Shown in pieces: positions 16,187-42,605 of a DNA stretch of 58,820 nt; positions within the stretch are counted from its first letter, which is position 1, and every line of letters begins with the position of its first letter. The translations under genes were made by a program, and so were the position numbers. The DNA comes from Basidiobolus meristosporus CBS 931.73 (lineage: Eukaryota > Fungi > Basidiobolomycota). The notes below the pieces were generated by a model, which did no database searches, was not told the DNA's origin, and worked only from the letters and a program-made list of their open reading frames with translations. The stretch spans positions 1-58,820 of the forward strand of contig MCFE01000555.1 in assembly GCA_002104905.1 (NCBI GenBank), given 5' to 3'.

Positions 16187-19100
16187 ATGTCTTCAAAAGA
16201 GAAGTCCAATCTCGTAGCTAAGCAGTTGTTAAGGTGAATGAAGCTTCTTGGCCTTCAGACTATCTCTCGTATGTGTCTGAGCAGGGTAGATATACTTAGC
16301 TAATTTTTCAAGTGACATACTGCGATACGAAGATGACCTGAAGACTTCCGAGCTTCAAACACGACAGGCCAAAACACGGGAGACAGCAGTGGCGGCTGCA
16401 GTAGAAGCGGCTCATATCCGGAGCAAGTATTACCTTCTTCCTTTAAGTTTGAACTGTACGAGAATCTGTACTGATCCTTGGAAAGCTTGAAGGATCTATA
16501 CGAAGAGCTAATCCTGTCCGACCTGAAACTCGCAAAGGAAAACGACATTGAGGAGCGTTTATGGCATACCATTTTCCATGGGCCCATCAAGATGTTACGG
16601 GGTCAGCTGAGTAAAATGCAGGTAGCGCTACTCTGAAGCAGTTGTTCCCAGTTGAATGCCCCTTTACCAAGTGTCCTCTTTAGTCCAAAGATTCCACCGC
16701 CATTCAACGTTCTCGTGTTGAATTAAGTCGATTGTTCGAGTTGGGGACCGGGTTCTATCATACCTTACTCAATAGCGTCAAATTACAGTCCGACATTAAC
16801 CTGGACACTTTTGGTTTTGGTAATTCCCTTTCGACTTGATACTGAAGCGTCTTTGACGTGAAAATATGCTGAATTGGTTTGTTAGACCTGTTGAAGCTGA
16901 AAGAGACGAAGTTCCCGAAGTACAAGGAGATAGGTGCAGCGTGCATTCAACGATGCTTAACGTATCTAGGCGACTTGTCGAGATATCAAGAGGATTCCAC
17001 CGAAAAGGAGATCAAAGACTGGTCACTAGCTCGCGATTTTTACGCACAGGCGGTTCGTGTATACCCGGATAGCGGTAATGCTTCTTTATCCTAGACGGCT
17101 TCATATGCGGCACCGGTCGCTCATTCCATCCTAACAGGTAGACCTCATGGACAACTTGCCTTACTTGCTACATATTCTGGCAATCACATAGAAGCAATCT
17201 ACTGGAATTGCCTCAGGTAAAACAACCTGCGTAGTACTGTTGAGCGAGCAGACACCCTAACAAACTCGCGATAGCCTTGTTACGAAATACCCCTCCTCCA
17301 TAGCGAGAAGCAACCTGCAAACGCTTTACGCCACTGTCACAAAAGCCACCGACAATACATCTTTTGAGTAAGCACTACAACCGACTCGCACTGTTACCAC
17401 CTGACCTGACTCTGGCGTCAAACCTTTACAGCGGGTTCGAACGATTTACCACATTATTTGTGAAGCTACAGGCCAGACTCCTCTTTTCCAATTCTAGGTA
17501 TTGGCTCCCATATAAGTCCTTTGAAGGCCTGAGCCCAACTAATATCTTCCTCTATAGCGAGGAGCCAATTCAGGACCTGGAGACCCAGGTCACTGACTAT
17601 CTTGAAAAGCTATTATTGAACGGGTTAGGGGAAGACGCCTACAAGCAAAGCGTTCGCATCATTACCATCTGCATCGCGACACTTTGGGATTTATTTGGCC
17701 GTCTTAAGGATAGCTCAGGTAGGCTTGCAGCCGAGCCAATGCTACAAAGCCAGACAACCGCTAACGTTTTAAGTTAGGCACCTCGCAAAATCTCCAAGCG
17801 GCGAAGCTTGCTCAATTCCAGACGCTCTCGTTGATATTGAGACTCCAGATCACTTATTTCCAATCTCCAGTCTTTACCAAGATCCGGTGGTCTGAGATGG
17901 ACTCACCCGAGTGGAAGCTAAACGAATTCCAAAGTGCCATCTTGTCCACGCTCACCATTTGGACTAGCTTCTGTCTGTCCAACTTCGAGTACATAACGCA
18001 GCTCTACCAGAGTTCCAAGTCGGATCCCGATCTAAAACACGTCCAAACAGTGAGTGGGATGCACTCTGATTGGATTTCTAGTGTACTCACACGATTTTAG
18101 AATGTAGAGGTGTTTATACATATGTACATCGATCTGCTGAACTTGCTTCCCACCAGCTGCGACCGAAAGATCGAGTCTACTGAGTATCTCTCTGAAGATG
18201 TGATGTTGTTGGGCATCCAGCCCCTTCGCAAGCTTCACAAGGAGCTCACCATTGGTCCACTGCTCCAGATGCGACATCAATCTCCAGTTCAGAAGACCCA
18301 GGCCCAGCTCAACCGAATCAGAAAGCTAGCCTTCAAGCTTCACGAGAGCGATGTAAGTCTCCGAGTGTGTAGTATTTACCTTTTAGCGGAAGTTAACATT
18401 GGCCTCTAGGTATTTGATCTGGTTCAATACAATGATGCGGAAATGAAGTATATTATCGTGAACGAAGGCGTGAAGCTCCAAAACAAAGAGCGCCTTATGA
18501 AAGCTATGGCACAGCAACTACTGATTGATCAGGTGAACTCTCTAGAGCAAGATCTGGCACGTATGCCAGCCCCCAAGTCCGCTGCTCAGAAGAATACTGT
18601 TCTGCGACAGATCATCCTGGACGTCGGGGTGTTCCTGGATCATCTTCCCAAGATTAAACGATGGATTAGCACTCGGAAGTGCGTGATTATTGTGCCATTG
18701 GAAGGTTCGTATTCGTGGGATGTCCGAACAAGATTGCAGCTAATCGCTCTTCGTACCACCAGTGATTGAGTCACTTGATGATCTTAAGAAGGGAACCGGC
18801 AGTTTAAATGCTCGCGCCCGCGAGGTGATCCGTTTTTTGGAAGGAAAATTCAAGGTCGCTGATCAATTCATTCGTCCTCAGCGACCCAGCGAGCAACTGT
18901 CCGACTGGAGCGAGGCACAGAGCTACTTCCTCGAGGAGGACGAGGAGGAGTTCGAGGGAGACGAAGAAGATGAGGAATTCTATGGACCACGCACCATCGA
19001 TCATGTGCCTCTGGAATATCGCCCCCTGCTTGGGTGCTACTTTTATCACAAGAATATCGCAGCCAAGATATCCACCCTTATCCCCACACTACTCATAGTA

Positions 19101-22199: not shown

Positions 22200-23865
22200 T
22201 TCGCGGAAGTTATCTATAGAGTACATGACTTCCCAGCCTGAAAGCAATTTTTGCTACTGTACATATCCCATTCTGCTTTTTGCCCTTCTTTTCCTCCCTC
22301 CGTAATATACACCAATAAACCGTCTCTGACCAACCCAGTTACTGCCATGAGCTGACCAATGACGCTACTTGAGCGTGCCATTCAATCTGGTTACTGCCAT
22401 CCAATCTACGTCGATTCGTCCGCTATTTTTACCCTTCGGACGAGGCTTCTTATTGGCTCGAATTGCACGTTTATTCATCAGCACAGATGTGTTTACCAGT
22501 ATTTCGAAGTTGCCATTCGCCCAGGGAAGCGAGGACGGTGCTCTTACCTAACTGTTGCGCTTTTGGTTGGGTTGGGTGGGCTTGCGGTCACGATTACCGA
22601 CATGGTTACGATGGCGATTGGGGAATCGAGATACCCCACCGGGTTGTCCACGAACTGCGAAATGGCGGCAGTGTCGCACGATACCACTCTGCATCTCGAA
22701 TAAACTGGCTGGTGCCTCGAGGCGGTTTCATCTCCGACTTGGTGTGCAATTACCATGGCTCATGGGGCCAGTTGGATTGATTTAGAATCCGGGCATTTCC
22801 TCCCCGAAAAGGCATTCATGTTACATCACTTTGTATGATCTCACTCCCGCTGTTTCCCATCGTCGCTTTGGTGGGTGGACTGAGGTTAGAGGGGAGGAGG
22901 CAGGGATCGAGGGAAATCCCAAAATGTCATTCGATGACAGGATGGTTCGGTCATTTGGGTGACCGACGATGACTCCGGCATAACGGTCAAGAAGCAAGAG
23001 ATCTTGGTTTTGCGCACCCTATCGCGATGGTTTTGGCTCGGCTGATGGGCACCTTTCTGGCTCGATGTATACACTACGTCAATTGATTATAACCTACGTA
23101 GTACTGCCAGGGTTGGTGGATTCTCAGTACCAGTGGAATGATTCATGCCATTCGGGTTGGCATTGGCGTGGATCCCTTGTTGCCAAACCGGGCATTCGAT
23201 GGATGGACCAGCATCACCATCAATTGCAGGTTGTGGTCCAAACCCAGCCACGTCCTCTCCGCTCATGAAAGAGACGGAGGTCCGATTGGCACTGCTGGAT
23301 CGGTCTTATGTGAGATTTGTCCAACTTGCCTAATCATGAGCTCATCAAGCAGCTACCACCTAATTGCTGATCTTTACGAATGACGTTCAGGGTTTCGCCA
23401 GGTTGGCAAGTCCACTCACCCACAGTGGTTTCATGATTTCACAGAAGAACGCACGCCAACTATTGTTTCATGATTTCACAGAAGCAGCCGTCAGGTATCG
23501 GACGTAGTAAGCCTATGGGCAGCCCGTTTAAACGGCCCACATGGAATGGGTAGCCCTGATGTTGCACTGGAAATTTCCGGACTCGACCGAAACTGTAGTT
23601 GATAAGGATGAGGTATTTCATTCAGGGTGGAGGCGCACCACTTCGGGAAATACAGGATACATCCGGACTGTAGAAATGGGCTTGGGGTCTGTGGCTATTT
23701 TGTGTCAAAGGTGTGAGGATATAGATAGAGGGCCCGATGTCAACCCTAACCCTTCTGGGGGTAGCTTGCTGAACGATGATGTCATGAACTTGATGGGGGC
23801 TTTATTGGTAACGCTTCTCTTCGAACAAATCAACAAACATAACAAAATCTTGTTGGCCAGCGGAG

Positions 23866-27445: not shown

Positions 27446-28093
27446 TGTCTTTAGTGTAGATGACTAGTTGTACAAAAAGAGAACACGGATTGGTTTTATA
27501 TTATCGAAGGTGAGCTGCTCGGTTTGAAGGTGGGTTAAGGTGGGTTAATTAACCTATATCGGCTAATCTACACAATAATAACAATATTGCCAAGTCTCTG
27601 CGCCACAAAGTAAATGACCTAATTTAGTGACGTAAAATCCCGTCCGAGTCCACCTCATAAGCAGTGGCCACCCAAACGAAATGAATTGCACGAGGTTACT
27701 CTCGTAGTCAACGATGCCAACAAATGTTTGCGCAATTCTCTTTATTTGCCATGATCACTTGTAAAACATGAGAAACGTATTATAGGATATGAACAAGCTC
27801 TGGCAGGTGGTTGAGAAAGCATATTGTCTTCTATTAAAAATATATATCTACAAAATGTAAAGAAAAGACTGGATTTGGCTTGGCTTTTAATCCACCACGA
27901 TATCATGCCGACTCTCCTCCTTTTCCTGTCAAGTGAGTTAGCCACCAAGTCGTGTGGATGGGGTGTACTCGAGACCGAACTTACTCTCTTCTTCTTTTTC
28001 TTCTTACGGTGCTCTCCGTCATGGCTCTCGTGGTCGTGGTCATGTCTGTGCTTCTTTTTCTAATCGAGTGGGGTGGGAGCTTGAATAAAGTGC

Positions 28094-29044
28094 TTATGAA
28101 AATCCAAGTTCTACGTGATCACCAACCTTCTTTTTGTGCTTTCTTTCGCCATCCTTGTCTCTATCCTTCTCACGGTCTTTTCGCTTGGCTCTTTCTCTAT
28201 CACGATCACGGTCACGATCGCGCTCTCTGTCCCTGTCTCTGTCCTTGTCTCTTTCACCGTCCCGCTCGCGAGGCCTTTCGCGAGTGCGCTCACTATCGCG
28301 CTCTTTCTCGTGTTCGCGAGCCCTCTCATGCTCCTTATCTCGCTCTCTGGAAGTGGCTGTGACGGAGGGCGCGGGTGCAGGGACAGACGACTCCACCTTG
28401 GCAACCGGCTGCTTGATATTCCGTTTTCGAATATCTCGCTCGGAGCCAAGTCTCGAAACATCAAACTAAGCAAGAGAAGCGTAAGTAGGTTATGGAGGGG
28501 CTGTCAATGAAAAGAAACCATCATACTCCAGGCACGGAACCAGGCTTCAGGGCGAATGCGTCCTTAATCGTGTCTAAATCAAAAGCGGAAATATCCCCAT
28601 CTGCTTTAGCGGGCGCCATAATCAGATCTCTCAGATATGTGGAGGGGGTAAAATCCGTCTTCCCTAGAAATTCGGCCGAACAAGAGTTGAGTGAATACAT
28701 ACAAGATGCAGATCAACACGTTCAGATTTTTTCGTACCGGGTAACTCTTTCACATACCCCTCATAGGTCTCTTCCATCTGAGGAGCCCTCTCAGCATTAA
28801 GATAAGGCCGTACAAAGGTATTGTACATGGAAGTCAATTTAAATTCCGTTATGAAATCTTGACTGCCAGAGTACCTTGGAGGAGGGTCTTTATTGTTCAA
28901 AGTTGATCCATGCTTTTAGACGATGTACTTGGCTTCAGTCAAAGTTTAGTGGAAATAATCACTACCTCGTGGTGTATATTGTGTTGGTAAATAGAAAGTA
29001 TTGTTTGTTTCCACCGATTCCATTGTGAAATCCATCGGCTCCAT
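28094..29044 (-). CDS. MED19: Mediator subunit Med19 (Rox3 family)
   Basis: SGSQDFITEFKLTSMYNTFVRP..TYEGYVKELPG, ..AFALKPGSVPG, and a charged RD/RE/KK-rich C-terminus; multi-exon. Confidence 0.78.
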
Positions 29045-29531
29045 TGTTGAATACGGCAAGCGAAAACAACTGGAGATAAGTTGCTTAGGAAGCCTACCCG
29101 AGATTATATGCCTCCTATTTTCAACCAAGTATTTTGAATGATGTGAGGGTTAGGGGGTCATTTCATTCAATTACGAAATTCATCTGATCGTAGGTTCATA
29201 TCAACTGCAATAGTTCTTTTTCTGCGATAATATACGCGAAGCCAACATCGATGATATATCATTTGGCGAGCGTTGAAAAATTTCTCCCCTTGCAATCCTA
29301 TTCTCGATCTTTATTCAGAGAAGATGATTGGTCAATCGTTCTTTTTCATACTGGGGAGCATTTTTCTTTCCGGAAGAGCCAATGGGAAGGGCGAGCTGAC
29401 CAACTCTTTGGCAAGCAACGAAAAAAGTATTTAAATGAGTTCTACGGGAGATGCTCATCACTTCTCTACGCGGCTACTGGATATTGTTAAGGTATTTCAT
29501 CCCCAGTTTACTTGATTTTTCTTTTTTTCAA

Positions 29532-29601
29532 ATGATGATCCAAACTCAGACCTGTACTGAGCATTACATGCGGACAAACCATTATTGCCTTTTATTTCTG
29601 A
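29532..29601 (+). ncRNA. snR56: Box C/D snoRNA, snR56/SNORD25 (U25) family, copy 1
   Basis: C box ATGATGA; guide CAGACCTGT-A-CTGA (D'); C'-like TGCGGA; TATTGCCT element; D box CTGA. The guide is complementary to conserved 18S ACAGGUCUG (yeast Gm1428, human Gm1490). Confidence 0.92.
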
Positions 29602-29733
29602 CTTTCAATCGTTATGCATCCATTCAATTGAAACGTGAACACAACTAACTAGTTGCTCATCTCCAGGTAGAACGCAATGCCTGGCTCAATGCATCAATGT
29701 AAGTATAGACCTATTCGGCAAGTGAAGTTCTCA

Positions 29734-29801
29734 ATGATGATCACAATTTCAGACCTGTACTGAGTTTATAGTGCGGACAACCTATATTGCCTTTTTTCTG
29801 A
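29734..29801 (+). ncRNA. snR56: Box C/D snoRNA, snR56/U25 family, copy 2
   Basis: Same boxes and guides; external stem GAAGT(T)CTC / GAGACTTC. Confidence 0.92.
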
Positions 29802-29944
29802 AGAGACTTCAAACACTTGTATTTTCTGTTCAACCCAACTCTAACCTTTTCTCAGATTAGTTTAGCCTGATTGTGACGTTGTTGTCCATGGATCTTCAGA
29901 GCGACTCTGACCAGGTAAATTATTATTTGATTAAGAGTGCCTTT

Positions 29945-30014
29945 ATGATGATTCAAACTCAGACCTGTTCCAAGTAACCTATGCGGACAACAAGTTATTG
30001 CCTATTGAATCTGA
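29945..30014 (+). ncRNA. snR56: Box C/D snoRNA, snR56/U25 family, copy 3 (D' box changed to CCAA)
   Basis: ATGATGA..CAGACCTGTT-CCAA..ATGCGGA..GTTATTGCCT..CTGA; external stem GTGC/GCAC. Confidence 0.88.
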
Positions 30015-30155
30015 AATGCACATAACTCGCAATCTATTTTGGCCTGTTTATTAATTGTATCCCAGTGTATATAGGAGTGTTCGTTCACCCGAGCTTGGTG
30101 TTTTTAATACCAACGTAAGTAAGCACCCTTTGTTTACATACTGTGATCTCATCAA

Positions 30156-30223
30156 ATGATGATAAACATCTCAGACCTGTTCTGAAATTCAATGTGGACA
30201 ACATTTATTGCCTATATAACTGA
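30156..30223 (+). ncRNA. snR56: Box C/D snoRNA, snR56/U25 family, copy 4
   Basis: ATGATGA..CAGACCTGTT-CTGA..ATGTGGA..TTATTGCCT..CTGA; 11-bp external stem CTGTGATCTCA / TGAGATCACAG. Confidence 0.92.
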
Positions 30224-31817
30224 TTACCCATTGAGATCACAGTGTTGCTTTCTATCCTGAACGTTCACTAATATCAACCATTTCTAGGAATTGTATATAA
30301 CATATAATAAACCAATAATAAACCAATATTCAAAACTAGATGATTTGTCTCAACCCCGTGTTCGTTATATTCATCGTTGGTATGGGTAGTGCTTTTGCGG
30401 GTATTGGAACGCATCGTACTTGTGCATGTGGCATCCGTCTACGTTTGGCAGCATTCTGCAAAGATAGCTTTGGTTGACTTAATTTGTAACAAGCTTTAAG
30501 TGTGATGTACAGCGCATGACCTTCGACAGTGGTTGCAGCGAGTGTAGCCTGGAATCCCCAGCAGCTTACAGTTGGATGGCTATTCTATTAACCTTCAACT
30601 CAAAAGTTATATTTAGAATAGTTTAATCGGGCTTGATTGGAAAATTGAACTACCACAGCAGGTGGTCTGGACAAGCGCAGCTTCATGACACATCCCGTTG
30701 TTTCAAAAGCGACATGTCTGCTTTGACCCCGACTAGGCTTAGCGTTGGTGCAGGTAGATGTACTGTACGAACTAGCACTGCCTGACAACATGTAACTTTA
30801 ATCAGAAATAGCCTTTGTCATACTGCCCAGCGATCTAACACACTCTCGCTCTCGATTTACCCCCAGAACATAATGCATGACATTGTCTACAGACAATCCC
30901 TGCATTTGACGGCAAGATGATTGGTAGGAAATGAGGTCATTTCACGGAATTAGCAAGTTGGGCGCATCAGTCCTATACATGGATTCCATGGCCAAATATG
31001 GGAAGTTGTTTACTGAGCTTCCACTTCCTTTACCTGAATTGAGGCTGATACCGTGACCTCTCAAAATGGGACGGCAGCGTTGTGTCCAGCGTCATATCCG
31101 TTGACCATCAAGGTCGCACGAGACCACGCCATGGACGGACAAATTGGGGCCACGAGCCAATGGAGGGGGCGGAAGTAAACGTAGTTCCATCAGTCATTTC
31201 CTGTTCGGTTTAACAAACATAATTGCCCACGCAATTTCGATCACCCGTTTTCCTAATTCCCCTGCCCCAGTTGCATCCACTGATACTCTAAATAAGATAT
31301 CGTTTTCCAAATCCTTCGTAGAACTTCTTTTGCACGCTGCTTGGCTCGCCTATCCACCGGCGGTGTTGATCTGGCCGGGTTGAAATAGAGCGATTCCGAG
31401 CAATGCCAGATCCGTTCCACCGCAACATGGAATTCCATAGTCCTCGTGAGGCTGACCAGGAATGTATAATCGACTTACCGTTCCATCCACCAATGGTGGG
31501 ATGTTGAACTCGTGATACTCCACCCACGACGATCTCTCTTGTTGGCATTTGTAATATGCCCCAACCCCTACCATGTATCCATGGAGCGACCAATAGTCGG
31601 GTTCTAACCACCACAACGGTTTGAATTTCCATATTGACCAAACTCCACAGACGAGTCTGGATGCACGCGTTCCTTCAAGTGTCCATTGGATAAAGGGATT
31701 TCTATTCAAGTGTAAACCTCTTGATGTTACATATTATAGGATACAAAAAAGGGGTTCAATTTCATGGACGTTTGTACAGAAAGTATCGGTATTCTAATCA
31801 TCACTTCTTCAAGAAGC

Positions 31818-33490
31818 TCAAGGGTTGTGGACGTAGCCGAGGTGATGGCTAAATCGTGGCTGGGTGGATTCCATGGTTCTGTACGGCGGGTTGGGTCGGT
31901 GGTCAAGGGGGCTGTCCGTGTCACTCTCTGGGGGGCTAAGCGTTCCGAAGATCAGGCCCAGCGATTCCTGGCCGATGGGTGCCGGGGCCCTACTGCCGGC
32001 CGCGTTTGATTCGGCTTGATGGTCGGGATGCTGGTTGTATTGGTCTGCGCACCTCGGATCGTAGCGTAAAATTTTCGTACGTTTGCTCATGGGTGACATA
32101 TCATGCTGCTTTTGGGTCATCGAAGGGGAGGGGAGCGAGCATGGTGATAGCGTGAGCGGCGAGGAAAATGAATAGTTCCGACCGGTCATGGGTGAGAACA
32201 TCACACCTGTGTTGGCGTCGCTGGAGAGGTTGCGTTTTCTTGTGATGTCTGCGGGTCCGTATGACTGCTCCGACAGCTTCCGGTGTGCATCGTAGTTCTG
32301 GCCATGCGTGTATATCTCTCCTGTGTAGTCTAGCGCGCTGTGTTGTGATGTGGGGTTTATGAGCGATTGTGATACTGTACTTTCCGCGGAAGATGGATCT
32401 TGATGTCCCTGGAGAAAGGGGGCGGAATGGGCGCGTAAGTTCTCGGTGGGCATATGCGACATTCCAGTAGACGAGTGGGTGTCTGTCTGTGCTTCGGAAT
32501 ATCTGTAGGGGCTTGCGTAGTCTCGAGATTGCTGCTGAGGAAACGATCCGGGGCTATGTGTATCATTGGTGGCGATTATCTGAGAGTCATAATTCAAACG
32601 GGGATGGTTGGCCACGAGGTTCTGTTGTTGGTTTCTGAAGTCAGGAATATATGGACTAGTGTCGGAAGGCAAGCTCATCCGGGGTGGGTGCATACCGGAT
32701 GAATACAGCGGACTATACAGGTAGTGACTAGGGTCCTCGACAAGAAGCGGAAACAGTAAATCCTGGATCTTGAATTGGGTAACAAGTGCCTTTGCCCTCT
32801 GCAACGGAATCCTAACAAGGAAGTTAGCCATTTGCACATGGAACCAGCAGAAGGTTGGGTGCTTACCAGACTCCTTTGAGGTGCATGGCTCCTACTTTGA
32901 CAACAATACGCCCTTTCTCATTCTTTAGGATACCGTCCCGCTTCCCTCGGGACATTCCGGTGACGTTCAGCAGCTTGGTCCCATTCACCATGTTGTTGTC
33001 TACGGGAACATTAGCATTGAAACCGACGGAGGCATCAACCTGTTAATGAAATACCTTGTCTACGCGCCACGCAGATCCCTTTAGCATCCACCTGGAAGCA
33101 TACAGTATTCTCATCCTCCCAGAGCGTTGTGGTGAGCTTTGGTCTTTGGCGATTGAGTGGCTGCATCCCAGAGAGGCTTGACCAGGACTCAGGCATTGGG
33201 TTGCTCCATGATTGCCATTTAGTAGAAGGGTCGGGTTGCTGGGAATATAAATGGGGAGATTGAATATTGATGGTGCTATAGAGGGGATCCTGGTTTTGAA
33301 CAGGCATCGGGAACGAGGCTGAGTATCCAGGGTTATTAGTGGTTATATTAGAGGTGGAGGGATAGGGGATGGTGGGCCCGTAGTGCTGGTTACTCGGTAC
33401 AAGGTTCGTGGGCATATGATTAGCGGTACCTGATTGAGGTATGAAACTGGATGGATTGCTGGGTGAGGTGAACGTATATTGCCCAGACAT
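31818..33490 (-). CDS. stuA: APSES transcription factor, StuA/Efg1/Sok2 type
   Basis: [30 protein letters not shown]|[45 protein letters not shown]|[10 protein letters not shown]; two introns. The start codon is not certain. Confidence 0.92.
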
Positions 33491-37092: not shown

Positions 37093-39978
37093 ATGCTCAG
37101 GTCGTTGTTAACTACAGAGGCGAGTGTTTTATTTCCCTCTGCGCCACAGTCACAAATAGGTGCAGTTTTGCGTAAGCAGATCCCACTCGCTAGAAAATGC
37201 TCTTTACGATTCCATTTGATTTCACAACGCCGCACAATTACCGCCAGCCAGAAGGCACGAAGCGTTACTGAAGTGGCTGGATACAAGCCCCTTCTACCTA
37301 CCAAAAGCCTCAGTATCCAGCAGAAGAAAGCCCGTACACAAAAGGAGTTGTTGGAGATATTGGAGCAAGACCGCATTGAGATACTTAGCACGAGCGATTT
37401 ATTTATCCTTCTCAAATACCTTGTCGCCACTCAACCCTCGCCCGAAGCGCTGCAACTGAAATCCCGGAAATTACTCGACGCTATTCGCCTCCGCAATGCA
37501 GACACTGACTTTCGAACCCTCGAGCACTTGTCGATTTTGCTCGAGTGCTACACTAGGTTGGGCTATTTTCGAGAGCCGACAAAGATAGCGGAGAAACTGA
37601 AAGCAATCAACCTTCCCGCTAACCCCGCGTTCTTCTCTACCCTGCTACTGGTCCTGGGACGGCGGGATTTCGGTCAAGCGTTTTCGGTATTCAAGACGCT
37701 GCTAAACGAAAAGGAGCACCTCGATCTCGATAGTTTTATTACCATGACAAAGCATTGTGGGATGTATCAGAAGCTTGATCGGTTGGAAGAGGTAGAGGGC
37801 ATCATCAGAGAAATGAAATTTCAGCCTCGCCTGAAGATCTACTCGGCGTTGATCTTCGCCTACTCCAAGAACAATCAGATCGAAAAGTGTTTTTCGTTGC
37901 TGGAAGAGATGAAAAGCTTCAAACTGCAGCCAAGCAATCGCATCTACACTACACTGATCCGTGGATGTAGGGCCACCTCCATGCTAGACAAGGTGGATCT
38001 GCTGTACAGCGACATAACTCAAGCGCAGTCTCGATCAGACATTGGTGTATACAATTCGCTGATTTCATTCTACGCTCATTCGAACGTGTCCAGAGCAGTC
38101 CAGGTGTTCCGAGAGCTCCCTGACCGCGGCCTAGTGCCCGACCTGTTCACTTATTCATCCATGATCCACGGCTTTTGCAAGCACAAGCAGCTTGACCAGG
38201 CATTGACGTTATACTACGAGATGCTCCATAAAGACATCCAGCCCAATGTGGTAATCTGCAATACGCTGATCGATGCTCACGCCAAACTTGGGTTGGTGCA
38301 GAAGGGCCTCAGATTCTACCAGGAGATGGCAGTGCGGCGCATCCCTCCCGATGTCCACACCTACAATATCCTGATCAACATGTACGCACAGCATTCAGAC
38401 CTGGCCAGGATGCAGGACATGTTCCAAGAGATGCTGAGTCAGCACTGCCGTCCTGATACCATCACATACTCGACCCTGATCTCCGGTTACAGTAAAAATG
38501 GTCAAATGAAGCTTGCCGAGTCGGCCTATAGCGAGATGCTCCAGAAGAGACTGGTCCCCAATTTGATCACGTATAACACGATGTTGCATGGATATGGGCT
38601 TGAGGGAGACACCGCCAAGATGGAGTCTCTTTTTGAAGGGATGCTCGCAAACAAAGTCTCCCCCAACAGGATGACTTTCGATATTCTGCTCAACGCTCAC
38701 GCAAGGCACTCCCGCGTGGACGAAGTGGCTGCAACGCTCGAAAGGATGAAGACCTGGGGGGTGAGTGTCGACTCGGCTGCCTATGATTCCCTGGTTGGCG
38801 ATTCGGAGAAGGCACAGGCAGCCTCGAAAGTGAAGCTTTACGACTCGGTAGAGAATTGCAACCGAAGGATACGAGAGTTCATCGCCCGAGGGGACATGGA
38901 CGCGGCCAAGAATCTTTACGACGAAATGAAGCAAAAAAAAATCTTTCCCGACACCGTCACCTGCAACACGTTGATTTTCGGGTGGCTTTCTGGTGGATGC
39001 TTTTCAGAAGCCGTTGCCTTCCTTGAAAAAATGAAGGAGGACCGCATACTGCCCGATAAAATCACCTACAACTCGTTTGTCACCGCATATGCCAGGGCGT
39101 CAGATCCCAAATCCGCACTGCTGTTCTTCAACAAGATGCGCGGCCTGGGGATTGTGCCAGACATCAAAACCTTCAGTAGCTTGATCCATGCTTATGTCAA
39201 GTGCGCTGATATGGACAGGGCACAGATATTATTCAGCCAGTTGCTGAGGAGCCGCATCAAACCGGATATGATGATCTTCAATATTTTAATCAACGGATAC
39301 GCCAAGCGCCACCAGATGCAGAAGGCCCTCGATACGCTCAGTCAAGCCATACGGATGGGGTGTAGCCCCAATTGCGAGACGTACAACGGGCTAATTGACG
39401 GGTATTGCAAAAGCGGGAATTTTACTCAGGCGCTGGCTATGTACCGGGAAATGAAGGCGAAGAGGATACCTGAGAACTCACACACCTTCTCCATCATCAT
39501 GAACTGTTTCAGCAGACTTGGGGAAAATGAGGAGGTGTTGCGGATCTGGGAGGTGACAAAGCGTCAAGGGTTCGCCAACCACGAGCTCAACCCCGCTATC
39601 ACTGTGTTGTTGGATTCATGCGGGTTCAACTCAGACCTGCGTACACTCCAAAGTGTATGGAGCGCAGCCAAGCAGGAAGTTCCTCTGGACGAGAACAATT
39701 TCAATTCCTACATTGAAGCACTGTGCAGGCTAGGGGCGTATGAACATGCGAAGAAGGTGTTCATAGAGGAAATGCCTGGGGCTGGTATCCGGCCATCCTT
39801 GAAGACATGCCAGACACTACTCACTCAGTTGAGGTCCAAAAGAAGGGTGGACGACGCAAGCGTGATCACCCGACACATACGAGCCCGGTATCCATCGCTC
39901 TACGATGGGCTGGGGACACTTCCCAAGAACGACTCTAGCATTTCCATTCCCAAGCACCCTTACACTCCACAGAACTAG
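37093..39978 (+). CDS. Pentatricopeptide-repeat protein, probably mitochondrial (961 aa, intronless)
   Basis: About 16 canonical 35-aa repeats (e.g. PDLFTYSSMIHGFCKHKQLDQALTLYYEM); basic Ser/Arg-rich N-terminus without acidic clusters. Confidence 0.95.
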   Translation: MLRSLLTTEASVLFPSAPQSQIGAVLRKQIPLARKCSLRFHLISQRRTITASQKARSVTEVAGYKPLLPTKSLSIQQKKARTQKELLEILEQDRIEILSTSDLFILLKYLVATQPSPEALQLKSRKLLDAIRLRNADTDFRTLEHLSILLECYTRLGYFREPTKIAEKLKAINLPANPAFFSTLLLVLGRRDFGQAFSVFKTLLNEKEHLDLDSFITMTKHCGMYQKLDRLEEVEGIIREMKFQPRLKIYSALIFAYSKNNQIEKCFSLLEEMKSFKLQPSNRIYTTLIRGCRATSMLDKVDLLYSDITQAQSRSDIGVYNSLISFYAHSNVSRAVQVFRELPDRGLVPDLFTYSSMIHGFCKHKQLDQALTLYYEMLHKDIQPNVVICNTLIDAHAKLGLVQKGLRFYQEMAVRRIPPDVHTYNILINMYAQHSDLARMQDMFQEMLSQHCRPDTITYSTLISGYSKNGQMKLAESAYSEMLQKRLVPNLITYNTMLHGYGLEGDTAKMESLFEGMLANKVSPNRMTFDILLNAHARHSRVDEVAATLERMKTWGVSVDSAAYDSLVGDSEKAQAASKVKLYDSVENCNRRIREFIARGDMDAAKNLYDEMKQKKIFPDTVTCNTLIFGWLSGGCFSEAVAFLEKMKEDRILPDKITYNSFVTAYARASDPKSALLFFNKMRGLGIVPDIKTFSSLIHAYVKCADMDRAQILFSQLLRSRIKPDMMIFNILINGYAKRHQMQKALDTLSQAIRMGCSPNCETYNGLIDGYCKSGNFTQALAMYREMKAKRIPENSHTFSIIMNCFSRLGENEEVLRIWEVTKRQGFANHELNPAITVLLDSCGFNSDLRTLQSVWSAAKQEVPLDENNFNSYIEALCRLGAYEHAKKVFIEEMPGAGIRPSLKTCQTLLTQLRSKRRVDDASVITRHIRARYPSLYDGLGTLPKNDSSISIPKHPYTPQN

Positions 39979-40673: not shown

Positions 40674-42605
40674 ATGGTTCAACTCTCACGATCACTCGCC
40701 CTCCTCTGCCTGACCATCCCTCTCCTGATCACCTCCAGTTCCGAGGGTGCTTATGTCTGGCCAAGGCCACAGAAATTCTCCCAAGGTGACTCCACCATCA
40801 TGGTTTCCAGCGGAATCGAGTTCCAGATCCAAGGCAAAGGCAGCTACATCGGCATCGCCAAGAAGGCGGCCAAGCGCTACCGCGAGACGCTGGTCAAAGA
40901 AAAGTGGACCCCGTACGTTTCCTGGGCCCCGACACCCGTCGACTCATCCGGCGAGGAGATGGCCAGAAAGAACATGATCCCAGTGAAGAAAAGCAACGCC
41001 TGGCTGAAGAAGATTGTCCTGCAGATCGAAAATGGCAACGCGAGCCTTGGCCTGGATACCGACGAGTCCTATTCATTGGATATCCCCCATCGCAATAAGA
41101 ACAACAAATCGGTGACTGGAACCATCAAATCCAAAACAGTCTTCGGTGCCCTTCGTGGCTTGGAAACCTTGAGTCAGCTAGTCAACTACGACAAAAGCAT
41201 AGTAAGTCCCTTTTGCTGCATCCTGCCCTTCGCCCGCTAACCCGACATCTAGGGCAGATACATTTCTTACGGCCCTTGGCACATTGAAGACAAGCCATCC
41301 TACAAGCACCGTGGCTTCATGCTGGATGTCACTCGAAACTGGTTTTCCGTAGACGAACTCAAGACCCAGATCGATGCGTTGAGCTGGAACAAATTCAATG
41401 TCCTGCATCTCCATCTTTCTGACGCCCAGAGTTTCTCCCTTGCATCGGAGGTAAGCATCCCTGCAAACCATGCTGCAACCCTATGCTGAGCGATCTGTTC
41501 TGGCCTAGGTTTATCCCCAGCTCCGCGCAATGGCTTACGACAGATTCCAACCCGGTATGATTTACACCAAGAAAGATATGCTGGATCTGGTGGGCTATGC
41601 ACTAGAGGTACTTTTCCGAACCGCTCGTTGCCGCCATTTCCACATGCTAACAATGAATGCGTCATCCAGCGTGGCATAAGGATCATCCCTGAGATCGAAA
41701 TGCCTGGACATGCCTACGCTACTGCATTGCCATTCCCAGGAATGATGGTCTGCGCAAATGTCCAGCCGGTGTGGCGAGCCATCGACTACCAACCACCCAG
41801 TGGCCAGTTCGACGTGACACAGGACATCACTTATGAGGTGACGGAGAATCTGATCAAGGAGGTCGCTTCTTGGTTCCCAGACCAATTGATCCATACGGGT
41901 GGAGATGAGGTGGGGATGCGTTGCTACAAGGAGAGCGAGGTTTTCCAGAAGAATCTCAAGGAGAAGAATATGACGGTTGTGCAAGCTATGCAGCACTTTT
42001 ACGACAAGGTGGATGAGTATGTCACCAAGGCTGGCAAGCGTCCAATTGTCTGGGAAGAGGCTTTGCTAAACAAGGACCTCAACCTTACCATTCCAAAGCA
42101 CTTCATCGTCCAGCAATGGACCGGAAGTAAGAATACCAAGGTGATCGTTAGTCAAGGGCACGACATCATCCAAAGTGGATCCGACTACTGGTACCTGGAC
42201 GTGGGCCATGGACGCCATGCCCCAGGATGGGTCGACTGTCCAACCTGTGACAAATATCGCACCTGGCAAAAGATTTACTCCCACGACCTACGCGCGAACC
42301 TCACCGAAGCTGAGGGTATCCATGTTCTAGGTGGGGAAGCCGCCATGTGGACGGAGCAAATCGATTCCTACAACCTGAACGTTCAGATGTGGCCCCGTGC
42401 TGCCGCTGCTGCAGAAGTTCTATGGAGCGGTTACAGCGCCATCAACTATACCGATATCTTTGGCTCTGTGAAGCGTGCTTTCCCCAGACTCAATGAATGG
42501 CGGTACCGTATGGGCGGTAGAGGGATCAAGGGCGCAGCGATTGCTCCCCTCTGGTGTGTCAAGCAAATGGGATGGTGCGATCTTCCTGCCGGCTACGAGG
42601 CGTAG
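40674..42605 (+). CDS. Secreted beta-N-acetylhexosaminidase, GH20
   Basis: Signal peptide; GH20b domain ending GALRGLETLSQL; HRGFMLDVTRNWF; IPEIEMPGH; catalytic HTGGDE; VLGGEAAMWTEQ; WPRAAAAAEVLWS; three introns. Confidence 0.95.

Follow-up and report, generated by a model that had tools for sequence, protein, structure and literature searches.

What is encoded between the divergently transcribed 226-aa gene and the next annotated gene on contig MCFE01000555.1 of the early-diverging fungus Basidiobolus meristosporus CBS 931.73 (assembly GCA_002104905.1)? The GenBank record calls no gene from 28829 to 32717 of the 58,820-bp stretch that we analysed in full (hereafter the window), and a preliminary description had placed in this unannotated interval a non-coding host gene whose four introns each carry a paralogue of the same small nucleolar RNA (snoRNA), snR56/U25. 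We found the core of that observation to be real, and confirmed four snR56-type box C/D snoRNAs, one per predicted intron. The interval originally delimited, 29492-30287, begins precisely at the first GT of these introns and ends at their last AG. We consider it quite probable that the locus is an unannotated RNA polymerase II (Pol II) gene whose only consequential products are four paralogous snR56/SNORD25-type snoRNAs.

The family membership of the four copies was examined with Rfam, in which the snR56 family (RF01188) has a gathering score of 54 bits. At the gathering threshold, a scan of the whole 58,820-bp window returned exactly three matches, all of them to snR56 (copies 1, 2 and 4). 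A permissive scan of positions 29000-30900 (1.9 kb) added copy 3 (29941-30016) with 43.0 bits and E = 4e-4, a copy that scores low because its D′ box reads CCAA. Each of the four is matched over the full model, and the snR56/SNORD25 assignment is in this way upheld for all of them, three above the gathering score and one below it. When the four copies were used to build a sequence-only model, it likewise gave exactly four matches in the 58.8-kb window. The boxes of the repeats, first described as about 70 nt long, all lie at the positions reported for them, and the units measure 72-76 nt. Their elements follow the same order in all four: a C box of the RUGAUGA type, present as ATGATGA, is followed by 8-9 variable nt, the guide CAGACCTGT with a further A or T, and the D′ box (CCAA in copy 3, CTGA in the other three). 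Downstream of D′ come 7-8 variable nt, a C′ box of the form TG[C/T]GGA, another 7-8 variable nt, the invariant accessory element TATTGCCT, 5-7 U/A-rich nt and the terminal CTGA of the D box.

The probable target of these RNAs can be read from their guide. In the complement of NS6, a universal primer for fungal 18S, the reverse complements of TATTGCCT and CAGACCTGT, namely AGGCAATA and ACAGGTCTG, stand next to each other, and it is from this primer sequence that the target site was read. There, the guide CAGACCTGT plus A or T pairs with (A)ACAGGTCTG, and the fifth nucleotide from D′ is a C that faces the first G of GG. The duplex measures 9 bp for copies 1 and 2, and 10 bp for copies 3 and 4. 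This agrees with the earlier proposal that, by the D+5 rule, the D′ guide specifies the 2′-O-methylated guanosine (Gm) at 18S Gm1428 of yeast and Gm1490 of human. Deletion of snr56 in yeast abolishes one of five 18S Gm residues, Gm1428 (PMC4344503), and the Neurospora snoRNAs CD19 and CD41 are intronic snR56 homologues that each guide 18S-Gm1423 from D′ (PMC2780460).

The preliminary description had also joined the two pairing elements into a contiguous 17-nt target. Their adjacency is correct; however, it reflects a pairing already known for this family and does not make a new dual guide. We tried TATTGCCT as a second methylation guide and rejected it: because the element lies 5-7 nt away from box D, the position 5 nt upstream of that box falls in the U/A-rich spacer, outside the pairing element. 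It is instead recognisable as the known accessory "extra base-pairing" of snR56, which is listed among the snoRNAs with this feature (van Nues 2011, PMC3116282), and the same UAUUGCC is also part of the Rfam snR56 consensus. In other snoRNAs, extra base-pairing raises methylation up to five-fold (van Nues et al., PMC3116282).

The divergence among the four units bears on how long they have been kept. The snoRNA bodies show pairwise identities of 0.72-0.83, as against 0.50 ± 0.03 (maximum 0.60) for shuffles. In the surrounding segments, identity is 0.48 versus 0.46 shuffled from donor to C box, 0.52 versus 0.50 from D box to acceptor, and 0.43 versus 0.43 in the exons. Within the bodies, 35 of the 39 functional columns (boxes, guide and accessory element) are invariant, compared to only 7 of the 38 others (Fisher p = 1e-10, a generous value in that the functional columns were chosen partly by conservation; the contrast with the flanks is independent of that choice). 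The conserved boxes and guides set among diverged spacers and exons, as first noticed, thus hold up. Conservation of the bodies, while flanks and exons are at the level of shuffles, argues that the duplications are old and that all four copies, including copy 3, have been retained under purifying selection. Copies 1 and 2 share an A before D′ and TTT after TATTGCCT, where copies 3 and 4 share T and AT, a pattern that hints at two successive single-unit duplications, an order that the tree cannot resolve. As for what is selected, dosage or specialisation had been suggested: dosage or redundancy fits the pattern, but target specialisation does not, because all four copies share the same guide and accessory element.

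Each copy is set in a predicted intron of its own, as had been proposed from the GT-AG pairs: a donor, a branch-like motif and a YAG surround all four copies in a fixed geometry. The donor-to-C-box spacing is 30-41 nt, the branch motif lies 11-18 nt before the YAG, and the end of the D box is at a short, fixed distance from the acceptor (65, 54, 51 or 60, and 64 nt for introns 1-4). Intron 3 has the weakest signals of the four. For comparison, the GH20 gene of the same window (40974-42605, 486 aa) gave a single frame-preserving solution, with introns of 51, 58 and 62 nt that have the donors GTAAGT, GTAAGC and GTACTT and, in two of the three, a CTAAC branch. A strict-motif intron search in the annotated neighbour genes gave no solution. 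Because their signals match those of the GH20 introns, the snoRNA introns appear to be ordinary ones that use the normal splice signals of this genome, but about 100 nt longer, by a local calibration that comprises only the three GH20 introns (the MED19 gene was ambiguous and the DLIC gene gave no solution). The extra length of about 100 nt per host intron is close to that of the inserted snoRNA plus its spacers.

The exons left by these introns were analysed singly and by walking the exon coordinates in a script. Over the exon chain, a spliced model of about 230 nt, the longest ATG-initiated open reading frame (ORF) has 11 codons, or 19 with the alternative acceptor of intron 3. The host gene is apparently non-coding, in line with the tiny ORF-free exons of the initial proposal (32, 59 and 49, or 40, nt; ORF of at most 19 codons), and the AATAAA signals are also where they had been placed, at 30306 and 30317 after the last acceptor.

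Two of the copies are further bracketed by external stems in minimum-free-energy folds. A perfect 14-bp stem encloses copy 4 (30138-30151 with 30232-30245), with 4 nt between its left arm and the C box and 8 nt between the D box and its right arm; the z-score of the fold is -3.8, and none of 200 shuffled sequences folded equally well. It looks like the external stems that aid the assembly of intronic C/D snoRNAs without a terminal stem. Copy 2 has an imperfect external stem.

The family, the architecture of boxes, guide and accessory element, the splice-signal geometry, the lack of an ORF and the selection pattern are established at the level of the sequence. From them, we infer a path from transcription through splicing, processing and small-RNA accumulation to the assembly of small nucleolar ribonucleoproteins (snoRNPs) and methylation. 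A primary transcript of five mini-exons and four introns of 151-175 nt would be spliced, the excised introns would be debranched, exonucleases would degrade each of them down to the stretch of about 75 nt that the snoRNP protects, and the spliced, non-coding RNA of about 230 nt would presumably be discarded. The D′ guide (CAGACCUGU plus A or U) would then pair with 18S (A)ACAGGUCUG, so that the fifth guide nucleotide counted from D′ faces the first G of GG. Fibrillarin would 2′-O-methylate that G, which corresponds to Gm1428 in yeast, Gm1490 in human and Gm1423 in Neurospora. Pairing of UAUUGCCU, 5-7 nt upstream of box D, with the adjacent AGGCAAUA would stabilise the short 9-10-bp guide duplex; the model presupposes AGGCAAUAACAGGUCUG in Basidiobolus 18S. 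The four copies would stem from old tandem duplications, and purifying selection would have maintained all of them, the simplest reason being dosage or redundancy.

Comparable loci were sought by scanning metagenome contigs for the pattern of guide, D′ and accessory element, which yielded 79 loci that were then searched with the four-copy model. Many of these 79 environmental loci contain a pair of copies, spaced 200-230 nt apart, in which both members have CAGACCTGT and TATTGCC; none of the loci found by the pattern scan has more than two copies. In a set of 20 non-identical loci, intron signals flank each copy, a GTGAGT or GTAAGT donor on one side and a branch motif plus YAG on the other, and an exon of about 40-50 nt separates the two introns. 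Two contigs with the pair were placed in Agaricales by neighbouring DUF6699 genes. In the genomes of Pholiota conissans and Collybia nuda, which carry the pair as well, the first intron begins 27-33 nt past the stop codon of calcipressin (RCAN) on the same strand, and the Agaricales host is probably this coding gene, with introns in its 3′ untranslated region (UTR). The upstream Agaricales copy mostly has CCGA as its D′ box. At the gathering threshold, Rfam gave no match on the Agaricales loci; in an E-value scan, the Pholiota copies had snR56 as their best Rfam match with 53.7 and 49.7 bits, under the 54-bit gathering score. In a tree of 76 snR56-type sequences, which has too few columns to place the four Basidiobolus copies and leaves the remainder unresolved, the downstream "B" copies cluster together (support 92/93), and all four Basidiobolus copies are excluded from this cluster. 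Because of this exclusion, the Basidiobolus and Agaricales expansions look independent. At two further environmental loci (L005:1325-1397 and L006:2859-2931), the upstream copy has lost the first guide bases (reading ...TACTAGACCTGTTCCGA) and the downstream copy is intact, a possible case of one pair member decaying.

Several observations count against the reading of the Basidiobolus locus as four intact snoRNAs in the introns of a non-coding host. First, copy 3 falls below the RF01188 gathering score and has CCAA as its D′ box. Second, intron 1 has the non-consensus donor GTATTT, and intron 3 combines a TTAAT branch with two possible acceptors. Third, only copies 2 and 4 have a clear external stem, the pairing around copies 1 and 3 being weak. 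Fourth, a 79-aa ATG-ORF (29251-29490, + strand) stops 1 nt before the first donor, making a short upstream ORF conceivable.

The first of these observations raises the possibility that only some of the copies are functional, with copy 3 being a decaying pseudogene or a non-catalytic variant and the effective dosage being three at most. The GA dinucleotide is conserved in the D′ box of C/D motifs, and the G-to-A change in copy 3 removes its G; the score of 43 bits, as against 54 for the gathering score, points the same way. Nevertheless, copy 3 keeps its C box, D box, guide, C′ box and accessory element despite saturated flanks, and in yeast, highly divergent C′/D′ motifs are both active and bound by snoRNP proteins (PMC3116282). 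Further, a non-canonical CCGA D′ is kept in the upstream copy of most Agaricales-type pairs, and therefore CCAA alone is no sign of decay. On balance, we regard the loss of function of copy 3 as possible but rather unlikely. A more far-reaching conjecture is that distant fungi independently fixed same-guide snR56 copies (four in Basidiobolus, and an ancient pair with CCGA in Agaricales) that are not redundant: one kind could methylate the 18S G, whereas the kind with a weakened D′ could act at this 18S site as a folding chaperone or timer, mainly through its guide and accessory pairing. We give this conjecture only a small chance of being right.

The weaker splice signals bear on another alternative, namely that the snoRNAs are real but are cut from an unspliced polycistronic precursor by RNase III/Rnt1-type endonucleases together with exonucleases, with the GT...AG pairs being incidental. 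Endonucleolytic release from polycistronic precursors is the mode of S. cerevisiae and plant snoRNA clusters. The weak donor of intron 1 and weak branch of intron 3 would be compatible with it, as would the long external stems at copies 2 and 4, which are conceivable RNase III substrates. However, the placement of donor, branch motif and YAG around the snoRNA is the same for all four copies, the host splice signals match the genome's own introns, and the layout of donor, snoRNA, branch and acceptor recurs in about 20 unrelated fungal loci. Intronic organisation is, moreover, the published rule in non-Saccharomyces fungi, including a zygomycete (PMC3596301; PMC2780460), and release from an unspliced precursor seems improbable here. 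Improbable as well is a coding host whose introns would lie in the 3′ UTR of the 79-aa ORF, as those of the Agaricales pair appear to lie in that of calcipressin: the stop 1 nt before the first donor recalls the 27-33 nt in Pholiota conissans and Collybia nuda, but neither a word search nor Pfam gave any match for the ORF (or for the flanking ORFs), and it is unannotated, contains the TATA-like box 57 nt before the donor, and has a length that is not rare by chance in 600 bp.

The features of the proposed non-coding four-copy host, its divergent neighbour and the Agaricales pair are collected in Table 1.

Table 1. Predicted features of the snR56 host locus of Basidiobolus meristosporus (window coordinates) and of the Agaricales pair (coordinates within L082 and L084).
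Feature	Position	Strand	Length	Remarks
Divergent neighbour, annotated gene	27887..28828	-	226 aa	Probably MED19/Rox3; identification weak
Telomere-repeat-like box CCCTAACCC	29147..29155	-		In the intergenic region shared by the MED19-like gene and the snoRNA host
TATA-like element TATTTAAA	29428..29435	+		Presumably the host's Pol II promoter; first donor 57 nt downstream
Exon 1	29455..29491	+		5′ end a guess, 3′ end at first donor; no ATG
Predicted intron 1	29492..29666	+	175 nt	Donor GTATTT; CTAAC branch, A at 29648, 18 nt to intron end; CAG
snR56-type box C/D snoRNA, copy 1	29528..29603	+		Rfam RF01188, 58.3 bits; C box 29532, guide 29547, D′ CTGA 29557, C′ TGCGGA 29569, accessory TATTGCCT 29583, D box 29598
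Exon 2	29667..29698	+	32 nt	
Predicted intron 2	29699..29855	+	157 nt	Donor GTAAGT; CTAAC branch, A at 29844, 11 nt to end; CAG
snR56-type box C/D snoRNA, copy 2	29730..29803	+		Rfam RF01188, 58.6 bits; C box 29734, guide 29750, D′ CTGA 29760, accessory element 29785, D box 29798
Exon 3	29856..29914	+	59 nt	Stops in all three frames
Predicted intron 3	29915..30065	+	151 nt	Donor GTAAAT; weak TTAAT branch, 11 nt to end; CAG
snR56-type box C/D snoRNA, copy 3	29941..30016	+		Rfam 43.0 bits; D′ degenerate, CCAA at 29970; guide and accessory element intact
Intron 3, alternative acceptor	30074	+		TAG; branch A to end 20 nt
Exon 4	30066..30114	+	49 nt	40 nt with the alternative acceptor
Predicted intron 4	30115..30287	+	173 nt	Donor GTAAGT; CTAAT branch, A at 30271, 16 nt to end; TAG
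snR56-type box C/D snoRNA, copy 4	30152..30225	+		Rfam 56.1 bits; C′ TGTGGA
Terminal exon	30288..30340	+		AATAAA at 30306 and 30317; 3′ end provisional
snR56 pair, Pholiota conissans and Collybia nuda	L082:84-491 and L084:3310-3750	+ and -, respectively		Consecutive GTGAGT...YAG introns, same guide

The setting of the host gene had been described as divergent from MED19. The opposite orientation of the 226-aa neighbour stands, but its identity is the weakest point of the proposal: the Pfam Rox3 match has E = 0.052, Med19/Rox3 clusters of the Atlas appear at 0.82-0.85, and the protein has no match in PDB. The box CCCTAACCC in the shared intergenic region occurs three times in the window, at 17622-17630 (-), 23744-23752 (+) and 29147-29155 (-), as against 0.39 expected. 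One conjecture is that the box serves as a promoter element of the Tbf1/telo-box type, belonging to the ribosome-biogenesis regulon. Further downstream, a 339-aa ORF (31818-32837, -) overlaps the 3′ end of the annotated 113-aa KilA-N/APSES gene (32718-33166) and extends beyond it, and the model of that gene may be truncated. At 37093-39978 (+), the window also encodes an intronless 961-aa P-type PPR protein with about 15 PPR_2 repeats. We found no orthologue of it in the protein collection, where its non-self matches, apart from one paralogue in B. meristosporus, are all land-plant PPRs (20-29% identity); judged by these matches, it is unusually plant-like for a fungus.

The RNA family and the gene layout at this locus are already known; the four snoRNA genes and their host are newly annotated. 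With them, an early-diverging fungus in whose annotation both were missing gains four snoRNA genes and a non-coding host; the known biogenesis and function of snoRNAs are left unchanged. S. cerevisiae snR56, human SNORD25 (U25) and Neurospora CD19/CD41 belong to the same RF01188 family, with a D′ guide for the conserved 18S G and the accessory UAUUGCC, and the snR56 guide and accessory pairing element are thus conserved from Basidiobolus to yeast. The difference is in copy number: four copies lie in one gene here, whereas yeast snR56 is single-copy and Neurospora has two intronic homologues on different chromosomes, of which CD41 has gained a second guide (PMC2780460) that the Basidiobolus copies do not have.

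Hosts of the UHG/GAS5 type, including fungal ones, resemble the predicted Basidiobolus host in having one snoRNA per intron, tiny, poorly conserved exons and no long ORF. In fungi, such non-coding hosts comprise clusters I-V of Neurospora (PMC2780460) and the snR72-78, snR57-55-61 and snR41-70-51 clusters of Euascomycetes, Basidiomycota and Rhizopus (PMC3596301). Whereas the UHG/GAS5-type and fungal cluster hosts carry different snoRNAs in successive introns, the Basidiobolus host carries four paralogues of one; the statement in the preliminary description that multi-intron hosts usually carry different snoRNAs holds for the published fungal hosts (PMC3596301, PMC2780460). Further, splicing has been demonstrated for the Neurospora hosts, whereas the Basidiobolus introns are predicted.

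The same C/D snoRNA is found once per intron of a non-coding host in SNORD115/116, SNORD113/114 and rat Bsr (PMC11028025). These mammalian arrays consist of tens to hundreds of near-identical units, exons included, and their snoRNAs are orphan, brain-expressed, imprinted eutherian innovations. In contrast, the Basidiobolus copies have a canonical rRNA target and are four in number, old, and set in flanks without detectable likeness. Numerous units that are homologous as wholes, as in arrays of the SNORD115/116 type, are not what is found here, there being four units whose flanks and exons are at the level of shuffles.

The Agaricales pair is similar in that two consecutive introns, with the copies spaced about 200-230 nt apart, contain the same guide and accessory element; one copy often has a non-canonical D′, as in Basidiobolus. 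It differs in having two copies in probable calcipressin 3′-UTR introns and in lacking synteny with the Basidiobolus locus. That such an arrangement had not been described in fungi is accordingly a weaker claim than first made, two-copy same-guide pairs being widespread in Agaricales; four copies are still unusually high. A survey of fungal snoRNAs, in which Basidiobolus was not included, found generally one sequence per family per organism, with exceptions (PMC5824354), and four selected copies are at the unusually high end for a fungus. Beyond annotation, the interest of the locus lies only in the role of the copies with a weakened D′ and in the repeated survival of snR56 duplicates among distant fungi. 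Taken with the Agaricales pair, the Basidiobolus host suggests that the guide for this 18S site has been repeatedly duplicated and retained, whether for dosage or for a division of labour.

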